Source: Blastocladiella emersonii ATCC 22665 (Eukaryota > Fungi > Blastocladiomycota). From it: a DNA stretch of 64,000 nucleotides. Position 1 is the stretch's first letter. Each line of letters opens with the position of its first letter. Location: positions 1,736,001 to 1,800,000 of the forward strand of contig JANHCV010000003.1 in the NCBI GenBank assembly GCA_025594325.1, read 5' to 3'. The position numbers and the translations under genes were made by a program. Under the pieces are notes generated by a model. The model did not search any database. It was not told the DNA's origin and worked only from the letters and a program-made list of their open reading frames with translations. Below are positions 9,401-34,521 of this stretch, piece after piece.

Positions 9401-12400
9401 CGCCGCCGATTCGGACCCGACGAGCGCCACGAGCGGCGGGTTCAAGACGCTGTACATCCAGATGGAGTACTGCGAGAACCGCACGCTCAGCGACGTGATC
9501 GAGCACGGGCTCACGGTCAACGAGGCGTGGCGCCTGTTCCGCCAGATCGTCGAGGGCCTCGTCCACATCCACGCCCAGGGCATGATCCACCGCGACCTCA
9601 AGCGTACGTTTCCGGCGTGTGATGCGAGCAGCGCCGATGCTAACTCGTCGTCGCGTGGTATGTAGCCAAGAACATTTTCCTCGACTCCGAGTCCAACGTC
9701 AAGATCGGCGACTTTGGGCTCGCGACCACATTCTTCTTCACGTCGTCCATGGACGGCAGCGCGCTGGCGCACACGTCGCCGGTCGGCGGCGGGACCGCGG
9801 GTGCCGCGCTCGGCGCCGCGCGCGACGAGATGGCCGCGTCGCTCAGCCGCATCGACCGGTCGCTGACGGGCGACATCGGCACGGCCATGTACACGGCGCC
9901 CGAGGTGCGGTCGGCGCACGTGAAGTACGGGCAGAAGGTCGACATGTACTCGCTCGGGATCATCTTCTTCGAGATGCTGTACTCGTTCTCGACGGGCATG
10001 GAGCGCGTGCACACGCTGCGCGACCTGCGGTCGCCCGAGGTCGTGTTCCCCGCGGGGTTCCCCGCCGCGGCCGACGCACCGCAGCGCCAGGTCATCGCGT
10101 GGCTGCTCAGCCACGACCCGGCGGCGCGGCCCACGTCGCTCGAGCTGCTCCAGTGCCACCTGCTGCCGACCACCATGGAGGACGAGTACATCCAGGAGGC
10201 GATGCGCACGCTGACCAACCCCAACAACACGGTCCACTACTCGCGCCTCATGCACGCGCTGTTCGAGCAGCCCGCCAACGACTTCCTCCAGTACACGTAC
10301 GACGAGCGGCAGCCGCTCGACGCCAAGTACCTCCACGCGCTGACCACGGTCCAGGACCTCGTCACCCGCACCTTCCGCATGCACGGCGCCGCGCACGTCC
10401 CGACCCCGCTCATGGCCGCCGTCACCGACGCGTACTCGGGCAAGCGGATCGCGCAGTTCATTGACCCGCAGGGAAACCACGTCATGCTCCCGTACAACCT
10501 CACGGTGCCTTTCGCCCAGTACGTCGCCCGCAACAACGTCACGCAGTGCAAGCGGTTCGCGTGGGGCCACGTCTACCGCGAGAACGGCGTCGGCGGACAG
10601 CCGCGCGCCGCGCTCGAGGCCGACTTTGACATTGTCTGCCCGATCCCGCGGTCGACGCCGTTGCCGCTCGGTACCGGTGCGGGCGGCGCGTCGGCCAGCG
10701 GGTCCTCGGGTTCGGCGGCCGGTTCTTCGACAAGCGGCGGCAGTGCGTCGGGCGCCGTCTTCTCCGAGTCGAGCCGCGCCAAGGTGCAGGCGGCGCTCGG
10801 GATCGCGCCGTGCGTGCCGCTGCCGATCGAGGCCGAGGTGATCCAGGTGACGGCGCAGGTGCTTGACGCGATGCCGCCGATTCACCGGCAGGGGTACCAC
10901 CTCGTCATCAACCACACGCTGCTCGTCGACGCGCTGCTGCGGTTCGCGCGCGTCCCCGAGCACCAGCACCAGGTCGTCATCACGACGCTCGACCAGACGT
11001 ACAAGTCGACGGCGGCGCAGATCCGCGCGCGGTTGCAGTCGATTCTGACGAAACGGTGCGTCGAGGAGCTCATGCCGTTCATCGCGCCGCAGGACCTCGC
11101 CGCGCTGCGCAAGGCGCTCGCGCCCGTGGTCGCGGGAAAGGGCCAGGGCGCCGTCGTCGGCCCGCTCGTCGCGCACCTCGACTGCCTGATCGCGTGGCTC
11201 CGGCATCTCGGGGTCGCGTGCACCGTCCTCGTCGCGCCGCTCCTCACGTACAACTACGCGACGTACCGCGGCGGCATCGTGTTCCAGGCCCGCCTCAACG
11301 CACTGCAGCAGCGCGCCGACGTGGTCGCGTCCGGTGGGCGGTACGACTACCTGATCGCGCGCTCGTTTCCGCCCGGCCAGCGGCCGCCGTCGTCGACGGG
11401 CGGCGGCGGTGGTGGAGCTGGCGGCGCGCATCTTCTCGGTGTCTCGGCGGGCCCCGCGGGGATGGGCATGCACCTCGCGGTCCAGAAGCTCGCGTGGATC
11501 CATCAGCAGCACTTTGACCGGACGTGCACGCAGGTCCTCGTCGCGTCGTACGGCGTCGGGCTGCTCGCGGAGCGCATGCGCGTCGCGCGCGAGATGTGGC
11601 AGGCCGGGATCCCGTGCGAGTTTTTGTGTACGTACTGACTGCCGCGACTTTTATGAGCCGTGACGGACACGCGCGACCACGACGTGTAGACGAGGACAGC
11701 TCGAACGTGGACGTGCTGATGCAGCAGTGCAAGCAGCAGGGGATCGCGTTCTGCGTGTTCGTCAAGGGCGACGCGTCGGGCACCGTCAAGGTGCGCAACG
11801 TGCGCACGCGGACCGAGGTCGAGCAGCTGCGCACGGGGCTCGTCGACCACCTCCTGCTCGAGCTTACCGCGGACCCGGCTGCCGACGCGTCGCTCCTCGC
11901 CACGCTCGCGCCGCACTCGAACGCGTCGTCGGCGGGTGCCAGCCCGCTCGTCGGCGGCCATGGCCACGGGTACCACGGTCACGGCCACGGTCACCATGGG
12001 CTCGCCGCGCACCACCACGCGTCCGGCAGCACGGGCAACATGGCGCCCGTCTCGACCGGGCCCGTGTCGATCGTCACGCCACCGGCCGTGCTGCGCAAGA
12101 TGAAGCACAAGCAGAAGCAGCAGGTCATGGAGAAGGCGGCGAGCTCGGTGACGCGGTGCGCGAGCGACGTGCTGGGCGGGCCCGTCGTCGCCGTCTACTC
12201 GCTGTCGCTCGACGTGCTCAAGGCCATCGCGGCCGAGTTTGCCGCGCAGATCGGCGGCGCGGTCGCGTCGGCGCCCATTACGGTCGCGAACCGGACCGCT
12301 GCAGCACCGGCATCGGCTGCGCGGCAACCGTCTGCGGCGGTCGTCAAGTCGGCAACAGACCTGGTGCACTCAAACGCAGACCGCGACCTCGTCGCGCAGG

Positions 12401-29240: not shown

Positions 29241-29593
29241 ACCACCCGTGCTCGCCCAAAACCGTGAGTACCTGCCCACCAGCAGTCATGCGACGTTCCA
29301 TCACTCTAAATATCATGTTAAGGCCCTTATCTACGAGGGTCGGTGACGGAAAAGCGTCGTCACCATGTCCTCCTGAAGCGCAAGGGACGTCACGCATGCT
29401 ATCCTCGGAACTGTCAGAGTTGAGGGAAAACGAAATCTCTCGACCCCGAAACCATCCGTGTGATCGACCACCTCGCCCCGCGGCTCGGCTGCTGAAGTTG
29501 AACTCCCTCCAAACGTTCGCACAACGCTGCCGTTGAGATCCTTAAAACACACACACTTGTGGCCTCATCGATGAAAGCAAAACGTGGGTTTTA

Positions 29594-30199
29594 TCACACT
29601 AATTCAGGGCCAGAAACACAGTCATGTAGTGTACCAAGCTGCGAGGTCAAGACAAACAAGAGGTCGAGAACGCTGGCGATGCAGAATGCGTCGTAATACA
29701 CCGGCTCCACGTGGTTGACCAGAACCATGATCACAAAATACACCATAAAACAGGTACAGAGCATTGCCATAATCAAGAAGCCGTTGGCAGCGATACCAAG
29801 CCCCTTGGGCCCTTGGACAAATTTCCCCACGATGGACGACAGGATGAACGCGATGATTGGATCCATGCAGCACGACCCACACCCCGAAGGCCGAGCGGAG
29901 GAAGGTTTAGCTGGAGCAGGGGGTCGAGCAGTAGCAGGCGCTTGAGTGGGGACACGAGCAGGAGTGGGGATTTGGACTGGAGCAGCGCGGCGACTAGCGT
30001 TCTGCGAAACAGCTACAGCTTGCGATGCCTGCACAATAGGGCCAGCGTGACCTCCGGGGACCACGATCTCGACGGTCGTGGAAGTGACTCGCTCCCAGCT
30101 CTCTGAGTTGGCTACGCACGATGGGTCGTCAGCCCCCGCAGTTGAGCCGATTTCATCTATACAGCGGGCACGTACGAATCCCCCTCCATTCGAATCCAT
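29594..30199 (-). CDS. Orphan membrane protein (Pro/Ala-rich N-terminus, 2-3 TM helices)
   Basis: Open frame from MDSNGGG. Hydrophobic segments GFLIMAMLCTCFMVYFVIMVLV and FCIASVLDLLFVL. Atypical, AT-richer codon usage. Confidence 0.5.
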   Translation of the reverse strand: MDSNGGGFVRARCIDEIGSTAGADDPSCVANSESWERVTSTTVEIVVPGGHAGPIVQASQAVAVSQNASRRAAPVQIPTPARVPTQAPATARPPAPAKPSSARPSGCGSCCMDPIIAFILSSIVGKFVQGPKGLGIAANGFLIMAMLCTCFMVYFVIMVLVNHVEPVYYDAFCIASVLDLLFVLTSQLGTLHDCVSGPELV

Positions 30200-30594
30200 T
30201 GCGGCGGGTAACAGAGTTTGGGCGGGCCCGCAGCAGCTGAGCACTACCGAGCTGGAAGAGCGTGAGCGGTCCGCCTGCCCCCGCTCGCCCGAGCTGCAAC
30301 CCCCAAAATGGCATGCATTCAACCAAGAAACTGGACTCAATTGTTGTCAGTGCCTCGCGTGACTCTTCTTGATTGACCATCGGTTCCATCGTGGACGTTG
30401 ACGGGTTCAAGTGAGCTTTGTAAACAAAATGCGTCTTCCAACGACGGACCATTGTCGATTGGCGTTGGTGTGCGTCGAGCAATCGCCTCATCACCATCAC
30501 CGAAATCGGAGGCCACTTGCTCAGTCAAACTATATTGTCAAGATTCCAAAACAGGCAAACATCAACGTGACACGGGAACTCTGCCAAAACCAAG

Positions 30595-30888
30595 TCAAAC
30601 GGTGGAATCCTTGGTCAGAAAGTCCTTGGCCGATGTGAGGGGAGTGTCAGAGGTGGATGCGTCGGCTTGCTTGGCGAGGTAGGCAAACTCGAAAGCGATC
30701 GCGATACAAAGGAGTTCGAGCGCAAACACAGGCAGAAACATGCCAAGTGGAATAGGGTCCACAAACAAAAGGATGAACAAGCCAATGAGCGCAAAGAGGA
30801 TAGCGAGCGCCATGACACGGTTTCCAGCGAGGCGAGAGTCACGGACGGGTCTGACGAGATGCGAGAAGCGAGACTTTGAAAAGGTCAC
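30595..30888 (-). pseudogene. Short two-TM orphan ORF, possibly a fragment with an upstream in-frame stop
   Basis: VMALAILFALIGLFILLFV and FLPVFALELLCIAIAFEF. The upstream frame reads ...LFLINLP*FILRAPINII... with one TAA. Confidence 0.35.
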
Positions 30889-31421
30889 ACGGATGATGTT
30901 GATTGGGGCGCGCAGGATGAATTAGGGGAGGTTGATGAGGAAGAGGCGAACTCGCAAGGACACGCTAGGCTGGATAGGGGGAACTTTGAGCGGCCAGTGG
31001 CTGTCGCTTTGCAGCGCGGCGAACGTCTCGGAGAGCAATTCGACGAGAAACTGACCGCCATGCGCGATGCTACCGCGGACGCTCCCTGCAAAGCGCGAGG
31101 ACTCGGCTTCGAGCTCACCCTTGGCAAGTTGCTGATACTAAGTTCAAACGGCGCGCAGTCGGTTCACTCAAGTCGTGACGGCTGGTCAAGGATCAAGACG
31201 TACGGACGGATGTTTGCCCAAAGCCACGTTGAAGGACATTTTAGCGCGAATCTGGTTGCTTGCGAGTTGTACGGTCTTAGGGCAGACGAGGGAGTGCGGG
31301 CCTGTCGAGAGAGAGCGAGAGGGAGTCCCGGAACCTCCTTGAATGCAGTGCCACTCGCTGAACCTGCATTCAATCAACCTCACGTGTCAACTCGCGAATC
31401 AGCGTAAGGCTTGTTCCGTGT

Positions 31422-33246
31422 ATGGGTGTGTCCAATAGATGGACACGAGTCCAGCGTGTTCCGTTCAGCTCATTTTCGAAAAAAAACCCTCTTTATTTGC
31501 TGGACACAGAGGCTGAAGTCACAGGCAGGGTGCTGGCTGCAAGCGCGACGGCATCATTTGTGATAGCGACGAGGTTGCGAGCCAACATCGTGACCGACGT
31601 GTACCGCGACCGCAACGAGCAGCCGTTTAGGCGCATGCAGCGGCTCGTCAACCTGGCCGAGCGCGACTTCGAGAACGGCCGCACCCTCCACCTCGTCGAG
31701 CCGCCGTCATTCATCCCCGTGCTCGGTGTCCGCCGCCGCACCATCGGCCTCGACATGAAGTCGCTGCGCAGCGTCATCCACCTGCCCGAGGTTAGGGCGC
31801 CGCCCGACGAGAAGGCGCACAAGGGCGAGGCGCCCGAGGAGAAGGCCGCGCGCAGCGCCTGCATCAGCGCTGCGCACTGGGACCACCTCATCGAGGCCCT
31901 CGACAGCGTGCTCAAGCCCAAGATCCTGCGCGACGCCAACAACAAGAACAAGTACCAGGGCCTCACGGACGGCTTCCTCGCCCGCGTCGTCTACGTCAAG
32001 GGTGGCGTGCGCGTCAAGAAGGGCCACGGCAACAAGGCGTCGGCCAACAACGGGTTCAACAACCGGGAGGAGGCGGCGACCGCGGCCAAGGGCACCTTCC
32101 TGCGCTACAACAACTCGGGCAAGGCCATCTACTCGAAGCTGTCGCGCAAGCAGTCGTCCGACACGTTGGCCACCACGTCGGCCTCATCGTTGCCGCCGGC
32201 ACCGCCCGGCCCGCGCGCCGAGCTCAAGGTCCACTCGCTCAAGACGATCCACATCCCCGAGGGCAAGTACACGGTCTGGATGGACCCCGGCGAGAACGAC
32301 ATCTTCACGGCGCTCAGCGTCGACCCCGAGCTGTTCGAGGCCCACGCTGAGCTCATGCGCCTCGTGCTCCAGGCCGCCGAGCTCGAGCGGAAGGCCGAGT
32401 CGCTCAAGGCCAAGCTCGCCGACGCCAAGCTCAAGCGCAGGTTCAGGTCGTCACTGTCGTCGTCGGTCGAGTCGCCCAATGTCGAGATCATGCCCAAGGT
32501 CGCCAAGATCGCCCATGAGGTCGTGCCGTCAGTCGTCCTCGAGAGGTCGCTGTCCCACTCGGTCTCGTCCAAGACGTACCACCACCAGACGCTGCACTAC
32601 AAGATGACCGAGCGTCGCGCCGTGTGGTGCGAGGAGGCCGGCATGCCCGAGGAGGACCTCAAGCAGTCACTCGCCGCTCGCAGCGACCCCAAGGAGTTGG
32701 CTGGTTGTGACCACGTCGCCGAGGCCAAGGCGCTCATCGAGAGCCTCGACAAGCGTTTCCGAGGAGTTCCACGATCGCCTGTCGCGCATGCGGTTCATGG
32801 TCGAGGCCCGCGAGCGCAGGTGGTGGTCCAAGCTTGCGTACTCGCTGCGCGACGCGGTCGCCATGGTCGGGTGCAACCTACACGGTTTCGGCATGGTCTC
32901 GTCCAAGCTGAAAGCGCCCGTCAAGACCATGATCCGCGAGCTGCGCGCCGCCGGCATCCCCGTGTACCTGGTCGAGGAGAACTACTCGTCCAAGTGGTGC
33001 GCGGCGTACTTCTTCGCCGACCCCACGGCCGACATCGAGACCTTCAACCTCACGGGCAAGTCGTACAAAACGCGGACGTGCCGCACGTGCGGCGTTCGGA
33101 TCCAGCGGGACCGCAACGCCGCGGTCAACATCTTCGGGTTCGCGCTCGGCCGCTGCCACCTTGTCCGCGTCGCGCCTCAGATCAAGTCCACGTCGTCCTC
33201 GTCGTCGCCGCAGGTCTCACCCTCCTCACCGTCGACCTCGTCCTGA
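31422..33246 (+). mobile_element. Fanzor1-type (eukaryotic TnpB-like) RNA-guided endonuclease gene; frameshifted and probably 5'-truncated
   Basis: Frame 1: PSFIPVL...IGLDMKSL, LTDGFLARVVYVK and RuvC-I VWMDPGENDIFTA (D 32283-32285). After a 1-nt shift at about 32756, frame 2: bridge helix LSRMRFMVEARERRWWSKLA, RuvC-II VYLVEENYSSKWC (E about 32977), Zn knuckle CRTC and RuvC-III QRDRNAAVNI (D 33109-33111). Stop at 33246. Confidence 0.85.
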
Positions 33247-33302
33247 TCTGCCGCCGCCACCACCATCACCACCGTTTCTACGGTTTCTTCACGCGCACGT
33301 AT

Positions 33303-33406
33303 CCGCAATCGATGCAGCGCGTACGGTCCCGGGTGCGCCAAGTCCCCCATGTGTATAAAGCGCCCGCGTGGGACGATTGGGTGGCGCAGGACAATCGAAA
33401 TCGCGG
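33303..33406 (+). ncRNA. Candidate Fanzor omegaRNA scaffold (nested stem-loop downstream of the ORF)
   Basis: Nested complementary pairs: CCGC 33303-06/GCGG 33403-06; TCGAT 33309-13/ATCGA 33394-98; GTCC 33326-29/GGAC 33389-92; TGCGCCA 33334-40/TGGCGCA 33382-88; GTCCC 33342-46/GGGAC 33370-74. It starts about 60 nt after the stop and ends at a compositional boundary. Confidence 0.5.
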
Positions 33407-34367
33407 CGAGAGGGAAAAGAGCGAGTGTTAGGAGGAGGGCGAAGATTAGGAAGAGCGTTGCAAGCTTTCGGCTTTGTTGGGATCTCGGATAGGGTTGAAG
33501 GACATCACAACTCGCTTGGGGATGAATGTACAAGCGACGACGCTGTAGAAGAGCTTGAAAGGTAGAAGTGCGAAGCTCAGGAAGAGTTCCATCAAGCGGG
33601 CGAGGATCCCAGCCGGTGCCGGGACGACTTCCGCTGGTAAAACGGAACGGAGGTGGCATGGCCATCGTCATCGTCCTGGGGAAACGTTGCGTAGCCAAGT
33701 TGCGGACGACTGTTGCGAGAAGCGTGTCCCGCTTCAAGAAGGGGCGAATTCGCACGGTCAACGCTAGTGGATGCCACAGCTGAATGCTCCTGGGAGGGTT
33801 CCAGAGTGTGAGAGGGACGTGAACGCTTGTGCACGGCAACGACAACGTACAAGGGCTGCATCAGCCAATGCATCGGCTTTCGGCGCCATGGTAATTGAAT
33901 GAAGGACCGATTGAAGTGTGGAAATGCAATACAGTGGCCAAGCTCAACCGAATGCGACAGAAAGGAGGGCTCACGACGAGAGGTTCGCCAGCTCACGTAT
34001 GCGACGTGGCGAAGACCATCAACAACTTTATATACATACCATCGCCCCAAGCGCCCAAGCCTCCCTCCCCGTGGCATAATGTGACAAAACGTAACTGATA
34101 CGAAGGCACATTATTCCAAATCTGTCCTCAAGTGCTGAGTGCGAACCTGATGTCAAATCAACGGCTTTGACAAATCACCGCACAAACGGCGACGATAGTT
34201 GAGTAAATAAGCTCTAGGAGAACACGTAGAGCGTGCTGGGGGTAATTCGGGCAAAGGAAAGACCGCAGACCACAGACCTTAAACGTCCTCAAGACGCGAC
34301 GGCTACAACACGTGACCGCGTGGCGCCTCAGCCCGCGGGCCCACGCGGCCTCCTCCGCGCTTGATCG

Positions 34368-34385
34368 ACGCGTTGTGCGACGCGT
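34368..34385. promoter_or_regulatory. ACGCGT pair at 12-bp period
   Basis: GACGCGTtgtgcGACGCGTttc, about 140 bp upstream of ATG 34522. Confidence 0.5.
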
Positions 34386-34521
34386 TTCAGGGCCGCCCGA
34401 GTGGGAGACACCGTGGGACAGCGTCTCCCGCACGATACGGCCCGCTAAATTATGCACGACCTGCTGCTCCCTCCACTACGTAGCACGTCCATGAAGAGAA
34501 TGCATCGTGCCACTTGACGCA

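Follow-up and report, generated by a model that had tools for sequence, protein, structure and literature searches.

A probable relic of a Fanzor1-type element, frameshifted and cut at both ends, in the genome of Blastocladiella emersonii

Proteins of the Fanzor group are recognised by a DPG motif at RuvC-I and by an alternative catalytic glutamate, the residue in the canonical RuvC-II position being inert (PMC10711439, PMC10530073), while the Fanzor1 type carries a TDG motif in the WED domain (PMC10711439). In Spizellomyces punctatus there are 42 Fanzor1 loci, 19 of them full-length (PMC10432273). Our literature search found no paper that links Fanzor with Blastocladiella, Blastocladiella emersonii is not among the entries in the supplements of Saito et al., and a paper on the giant viruses of zoosporic fungi merely cites the Fanzor paper. 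Here we analyze a 64,000-nucleotide stretch (hereafter the window) of contig JANHCV010000003.1 of B. emersonii ATCC 22665 (assembly GCA_025594325.1). One locus on the plus strand of this window carries the DPG motif and the alternative glutamate of Fanzors as well as the TDG motif of Fanzor1. We consider it about 85% probable that positions 31594-33368 are a decaying fragment, cut at both ends, of a Fanzor1-type element, that this element belongs to a young subfamily of a family largely confined to B. emersonii, and that the NCBI gene model of the locus is an artefact. A first-pass annotation of the same DNA had presented the gene as hidden, but NCBI already annotates it: H9P43_003446 corresponds exactly to 31422-33246 and its product (P0001) is a hypothetical protein of 536 aa with a PF07282 domain.

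The locus is covered by a 669-aa open reading frame (31422-33431) that is coding-like until the residues LDKRF (32745-32759) and then turns into arginine/proline-rich nonsense. The +1 frame is open at 32608-33246 and carries the remaining motifs of the protein, a change of frame that the first-pass annotation had noticed and that is borne out by translation and by a profile match (see below). We refer to the two parts as frame A (31594..32759, ~388 codons), that encodes the rear WED/REC part, RuvC-I and a helical insertion and is 92% identical at the DNA level to the paralog L001 from its position 10467 onward, and frame B (32761..33246), that ends with a stop codon at 33244-33246. As read, frames A and B have GC3 values of 0.95 and 0.93, whereas 31422-31592 has only 0.56. 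This contrast indicates that the frames, and a start of the coding region near 31594, are correct. The preceding lead (31422..31593, GC 0.52) is unlike L001 upstream of 31594, is not homologous, and shares the reading frame of the Fanzor part by coincidence. The earlier statement that recognisable homology begins near 31590 is in good agreement with the start of the paralog alignment at 31594 and with the shift in GC3.

The motifs are found in the expected order in the two frames. In frame A, the TDG motif of the WED domain is at 31965-31973 (LTDGF at 31962-31976; the family consensus is TDGY..RV...KGG, and the TDG..RV..KGG columns are conserved across 13 family members), and the DPG motif of RuvC-I is at 32283-32291 within WMDPGEND (32277-32300), with the catalytic Asp at 32283-32285 in a column that is conserved across the 13 members. 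Frame B contains AMVG (32860-32871), whose Gly (32869-32871) occupies the canonical RuvC-II site in the family alignment, and VEENYSSKWCAAY (32971-33009), which includes VEENYSSKWC with the alternative catalytic Glu (32977-32979), 36 residues downstream of the AMVG Gly. The zinc ribbon has a Cys at 32998-33000 and the CRTC pair at 33079-33090, and is followed by QRDRNAAVNI (33103-33132) with the RuvC-III Asp at 33109-33111. In the numbering of P0001, residues E448, C455, C482, C485, D492 and N494 are invariant in the 13-member alignment, with D236 and C458 almost invariant; the catalytic triad of the window copy (D236, E448, D492) is present and falls into these columns, as had been claimed from the sequence. 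The loss of one zinc ligand had also been noticed correctly, as a Tyr (33007-33009) stands in the nearly invariant C458 column. The long insertions described in the first-pass annotation do exist, but the alignment reveals them to be family-wide features that are not peculiar to the window copy.

Frame B matches the Pfam family PF07282 (Cas12f1-like TNB) at 1.1e-9 (38.7 bits, cutoff 26.3), and the NCBIfam model guided_TnpB at 6e-7, a score that is below the whole-protein cutoff of the latter model. A HMMER search with a two-copy profile against 1.84 billion representative proteins gave 17 matches at E <= 1e-3. Ten of these were looked up, and 9 are hypothetical proteins of B. emersonii while one is a metagenome protein; PF07282 was detected in all nine relatives that were scanned against Pfam (9/9). 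The metagenome protein (P0013, ENA, 590 aa), the sole one of the ten from outside B. emersonii, is of an AT-rich type, has a full N-terminus as well as TDGY, IDAG and RDKNA motifs, and may point to the nearest outside lineage. A word-indexed protein search, both with a single sequence and with the 13-member profile, returned only the three close copies, as low-complexity words saturate the candidate list. Among proteins with solved structures, the family profile matched TnpB, Cas12f and LaTranC chains at 1e-5 to 1e-4, and the Fanzor chains PpFz1, ApmFz2 and SpuFz1 at 4.5e-4, 5.5e-4 and 0.08, respectively.

The structural comparison points in the same direction. The AF2 model was built from P0001, and thus is without the 20 codons at the break, and its N-terminal 214 residues are of low confidence; the mean pLDDT is 63.5, with a core (residues 220-510) at 80-90. 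Foldseek returned only TnpB, Cas12 and Fanzor structures for this model, with PpFz1 in the first place, and many of the matching AlphaFold DB clusters are TNB-domain or transposase-named proteins. In VIA-align the best match was SpuFz1 (Z 14.6, rmsd 2.8 A over 197 residues, covering residues 215-508 of the model), followed by PpFz1 (Z 12.7), and the best five matches were all Fanzor1; lower scores were obtained for Cas-phi (11.4), ISDra2 TnpB (10.9) and ApmFz2 (10.9). Overall, the core gave Z values of 8-14.6 with Fanzor, TnpB and Cas12 chains, and the best 50 rows all belong to the TnpB/Cas12 superfamily. Both the fold and the profile match speak for membership of this superfamily. With regard to the REC2 pair of kinked helices and the enlarged REC/WED part of Fanzor1, what the model shows behind RuvC-I is long helices at 250-288 and 304-321, while its N-terminal 214 residues are the low-confidence part noted above and the window copy is without the true N-terminus. 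The assignment to the TnpB/Fanzor family, and to the Fanzor1 type within it, is supported by the motifs (TDG, DPG, alternative Glu) and by the structural ranking, in which Fanzor1 stands above Fanzor2 and TnpB. At the same time, the family is, as judged by its sequences, very divergent from other Fanzors.

At the break between the two frames the window reads TTC-C-GAG, and the paralogs L001 and L003 both read TTC-GCC-GAG, i.e. a lone C at 32760 stands in the place of GCC (alignment with L001, columns 1394-1395, translation of L003, and read contigs). According to this alignment the lesion is a 2-bp loss relative to the paralogs, with KRFAEEFH as the predicted ancestral reading. The joined frame proposed in the first-pass annotation is arithmetically correct in its 607 codons, but the extra T that had been blamed for the break is not. 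Programmed frameshifting was considered and rejected, as a slippery heptamer is absent at CGTTTCCGA and the other lesions of the copy are independent of the break. A sequencing or assembly error in a gene that is continuous in the genome would produce the same picture, and the site does follow a few consecutive T (CGTTTCC), a setting where assemblies made from long reads can occasionally go wrong. However, the Logan contigs of two runs, which come from the same sample as the assembly and are not a fully independent strain, span 32546-32812 (depths 28 and 160) without a single gap or difference. As they match the window, the frameshift is no slip of the NCBI assembly, and moreover the copy would be cut at both ends even if the frame were continuous; such an error is in our opinion extremely unlikely. 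The sole indel reported in 2.3 kb of contig comparison is at an A8 run at 31479, where the contig of one run is one A shorter; a polymorphism in run length or an error of the reads may account for this.

The NCBI model offers another way around the break, namely that a genuine 58-nt intron removes the frameshift and that the locus expresses a Fanzor of 536 aa whose N-terminus is short and whose triad is intact. We could rebuild the model exactly from the DNA and P0001: exon 1 consists of 4 nt (31422-31425), "intron 1" is at 31426-31581, and "intron 2" (GTTGGC...ACAAG) is at 32696-32753. The model translates cleanly to P0001 with its PF07282 domain and its catalytic residues, the second intron has GT...AG ends, and its length of 58 (60 minus 2) restores the frame. 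On the other hand, these 58 nt are conserved in-frame coding sequence in both L001 and L003, the donor (GTTGGC) and the acceptor (AAG) are poor, and the same model requires the 4-nt first exon. The expressed protein would still be without its N-terminus and one zinc Cys, the right-end tail of the element is missing as well, and the dN/dS of 0.91 (see below) also argues against it. We regard a genuine intron as quite unlikely; by comparison with the paralogs, "intron 2" reads as the gene predictor's patch that steps over the frameshift. In short, the model with its two implausible introns is most probably a predictor artefact and the locus a pseudogene.

The extent of the fragment becomes apparent from its paralogs. 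L001 (H9P43_008291), located on another contig (JANHCV010000011.1), has 92% DNA identity to 31594-33368 of the window and to nothing beyond, a third copy (L003) corresponds to H9P43_002144, and the DNA identity among the three sequenced copies is 92-95%. Ahead of its counterpart of 31594, L001 has a further ~155 codons, and a tblastn search with its N-terminal residues 1-155 found no match in the whole 64-kb window. The window copy therefore appears to be without ~155 or more N-terminal codons, as judged from L001, the single longer paralog, none of the copies compared being a full-length element with its left end. The first-pass annotation was right in that the N-terminus is missing, but its alternative suggestion, that it might lie in unrecognised exons, is contradicted by the tblastn result, which indicates that the N-terminus is absent from the window. 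At the other end, a conserved 3' non-coding tail (33247..33368) can be aligned with L001 and L003 up to ...AAAGCGCCCGCG. The two paralogs remain alignable for ~145 nt past the point equivalent to 33368, to a common right end (the homology between L003 and L001 extends until position 12402 of L001), whereas the window copy continues into an unrelated single-copy flank (33369..33520) where the read depth is back at flank level. The final ~145 nt of the element, including a terminal hairpin, are hence missing from the window copy. This hairpin is seen at the right end of both paralogs (L001:12377-12411 and L003:11010-11041), with three wobble-compatible one-sided changes between the copies, and is a candidate for an omegaRNA terminal stem or for a transposase-recognition hairpin.

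The sibling copies seem to be no better preserved. L001 is interrupted by a TAG and a TAA and has lost 1 bp, L003 keeps only the last ~262 codons, and judging by these lesions both are also dead. One member of the wider family, H9P43_004874 (639 aa), is apparently intact. The summed depth of read contigs, which is only a rough guide to copy number, is ~1.3-2.7x that of the flank in the 5' part and rises to ~5-6x at 33071-33301. Read-derived contigs match the element to or from 31935, 32407, 32420, 33186 and 33378 and then run into unrelated sequence; these junctions probably mark additional partial copies whose break points are staggered. Taken together, the rise in depth and the loose ends suggest several more 3'-anchored copies. 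LINE-like retroposition as the cause of the 5' truncations is unsupported, as the paralog right ends have no poly(A). As to the surroundings of L001, L001:8136-14692 on JANHCV010000011.1 is a perfect inverted repeat of 1703 nt (100% complementary), each arm of which contains a 524-aa Peptidase_S8 gene while the 3151-nt spacer between the arms holds the L001 Fanzor pseudogene. This repeat could be a recent inverted duplication, a product of gene conversion or an assembly artefact.

The neighbourhood of the window copy was inspected for associated genes and for element ends. In agreement with the first-pass annotation, no transposase family was detected among the called genes within ±10 kb nor in the flanking ORFs, and an IS607-type TnpA serine recombinase was not found within ±10 kb either. 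A search for TIR and TSD around the window copy and L001 gave only short pairs at chance level and no 30-nt inverted repeats. Some of the validated Fanzors (GtFz1, NlovFz2 and MmeFz2) are reported to be likewise without TIR/TSD or an associated transposase (PMC10432273). The flanks at 29400-31593 and 33369-34330 have a GC of 0.54-0.55 as compared to 0.68-0.70 in the neighbouring genes; their ORFs belong to no Pfam family and they are single-copy by read depth. A giant-virus origin, a possibility prompted by PMC12247965, was rejected, as the GC3 of 0.93-0.95 is host-like and the neighbours are ordinary host genes.

By analogy with characterised Fanzor1 proteins, we infer that an intact member of the family would encode a protein of ~700 aa or more, composed of WED/REC domains, a RuvC in split form and a zinc ribbon. 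Like SpuFz1, such a protein would use a single RuvC site, would be guided by an omegaRNA that is transcribed from the 3' end of the element itself, and would cut DNA next to a TAM at sites matching the guide that follows the right end. In such an intact element, 33247-33368 would be the proximal part of the region encoding the putative omegaRNA scaffold. An Rfam scan of 30500-34500 gave no match, and the folding of 33100-33380 is no better than that of shuffled sequence (z = 0.0), while the paralog tail has z = -1.9 and the terminal hairpin. An omegaRNA hairpin considered at 33303-33430 is unsupported, as z is 0.0 and the stretch straddles the end of homology at 33368. The window copy itself is unable to act as a nuclease, because ~155 or more N-terminal codons, and with them the N-terminal part for target recognition, are missing, the frame is broken by the 2-bp loss at 32760, a zinc-ligand Cys is changed to Tyr, the last ~145 nt with the terminal hairpin are missing, and its evolution since copying has been near-neutral. 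Without the ~145-nt 3' end there is no site where the omegaRNA scaffold would meet the guide.

The near-neutral evolution is seen in the comparison with L001, where the Nei-Gojobori dN/dS is 0.91 over 540 codons, with 1.10 in the N-terminal part and 0.5-0.6 in the C-terminal part. The lower C-terminal value may reflect constraint that predates the separation of the copies, or weak ongoing constraint. The D/E/D residues and 3 of the 4 zinc Cys are intact, and there is one frame-breaking lesion in ~1650 bp, which indicates that the decay is recent. Yet the dN/dS of ~0.9 and the Cys-to-Tyr change speak for a decaying pseudogene and not for a nuclease that could be restored by one edit. One can also imagine that the fragment is kept for a role other than that of a nuclease, either as a "ghost" source of omegaRNA that serves intact members in trans or as a piece of RNA-binding protein that has been exapted. 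For SpuFz1, ghost loci of omegaRNA have been described (PMC10432273), the 3' end is the most repeated part of the element (33071-33301, as above), and the C-terminal dN/dS is below 1. However, the window copy is without precisely that terminal part, including the right-end hairpin, in which scaffold and guide would meet, and the tail that it does retain folds like shuffled sequence and has no Rfam match. We therefore find a retained role of this kind very unlikely, and prefer to describe the window copy as a relic, and a rather unremarkable one, of a type of mobile gene that is already known.

Beyond this single copy, we may speculate that B. emersonii contains a deep, lineage-restricted Fanzor1 clade with a young subfamily that spreads through partial copies, anchored at the 3' end and broken off at varying points on the 5' side. 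The fragments might then be by-products of an unusual copying process (interrupted one-ended copying, or a rolling-circle-like termination at the right-end hairpin), or else ghost guide-RNA loci for intact paralogs. This wider scenario is rather unlikely, and we mention it as a speculation. More immediately, the analysis corrects a gene model in GenBank, as H9P43_003446 reads as a pseudogene that is patched with artificial introns, and it extends the list of fungal groups that possess a diversified Fanzor1-type family by the Blastocladiomycota. The window copy is worthless both as an editor and as a functional gene. The extreme divergence of its family from other Fanzors is of possible interest for the mining of compact nucleases.

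Finally, the features of the locus can be compared with those of the known systems. Prokaryotic TnpB and Cas12f (ISDra2 TnpB, 8H1J; Cas12f, 7L48) share the RuvC fold and the Cas12f1-like TNB with the Blastocladiella protein (Z 9-11). They differ from it in as much as the Blastocladiella gene resides in a eukaryotic host with a codon usage of GC3 0.93-0.95, the Glu of the canonical RuvC-II site is replaced by Gly, and the protein is much larger. Fanzor2 and the IS607 TnpB group, represented by the mimivirus protein ApmFz2 (PDB 9B0L), have in common with it the RuvC with DPG and alternative Glu and the TNB zinc ribbon. Here again the Blastocladiella protein is larger and has a TDG-bearing WED domain and a helical insertion, the structural score is below that of Fanzor1, and the IS607-type serine recombinase is absent within ±10 kb of the window copy. 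The closest known systems are the Fanzor1 proteins SpuFz1 of Spizellomyces punctatus (PDB 8GKH) and PpFz1 of Parasitella parasitica (PDB 9CF0/9CF1). The identity to SpuFz1 and PpFz1 is just 15-17% over the aligned core, and the window copy differs from them in being frameshifted, cut at both ends and deprived of one zinc Cys, with no TIR/TSD found and an omegaRNA that is putative. Shared features are the fungal host and the descent from TnpB, the TDG motif of the WED domain, the DPG of RuvC-I, the alternative RuvC-II Glu immediately ahead of the zinc ribbon together with Gly in the canonical position, a ribbon of the form CxxC...CxxC, and RDxNAA in RuvC-III; SpuFz1 and PpFz1 are also the best structural matches. 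The same holds for the organisation of the families, as the Fanzor1 genes of S. punctatus and those of the B. emersonii family are both multi-copy and both include partial copies.
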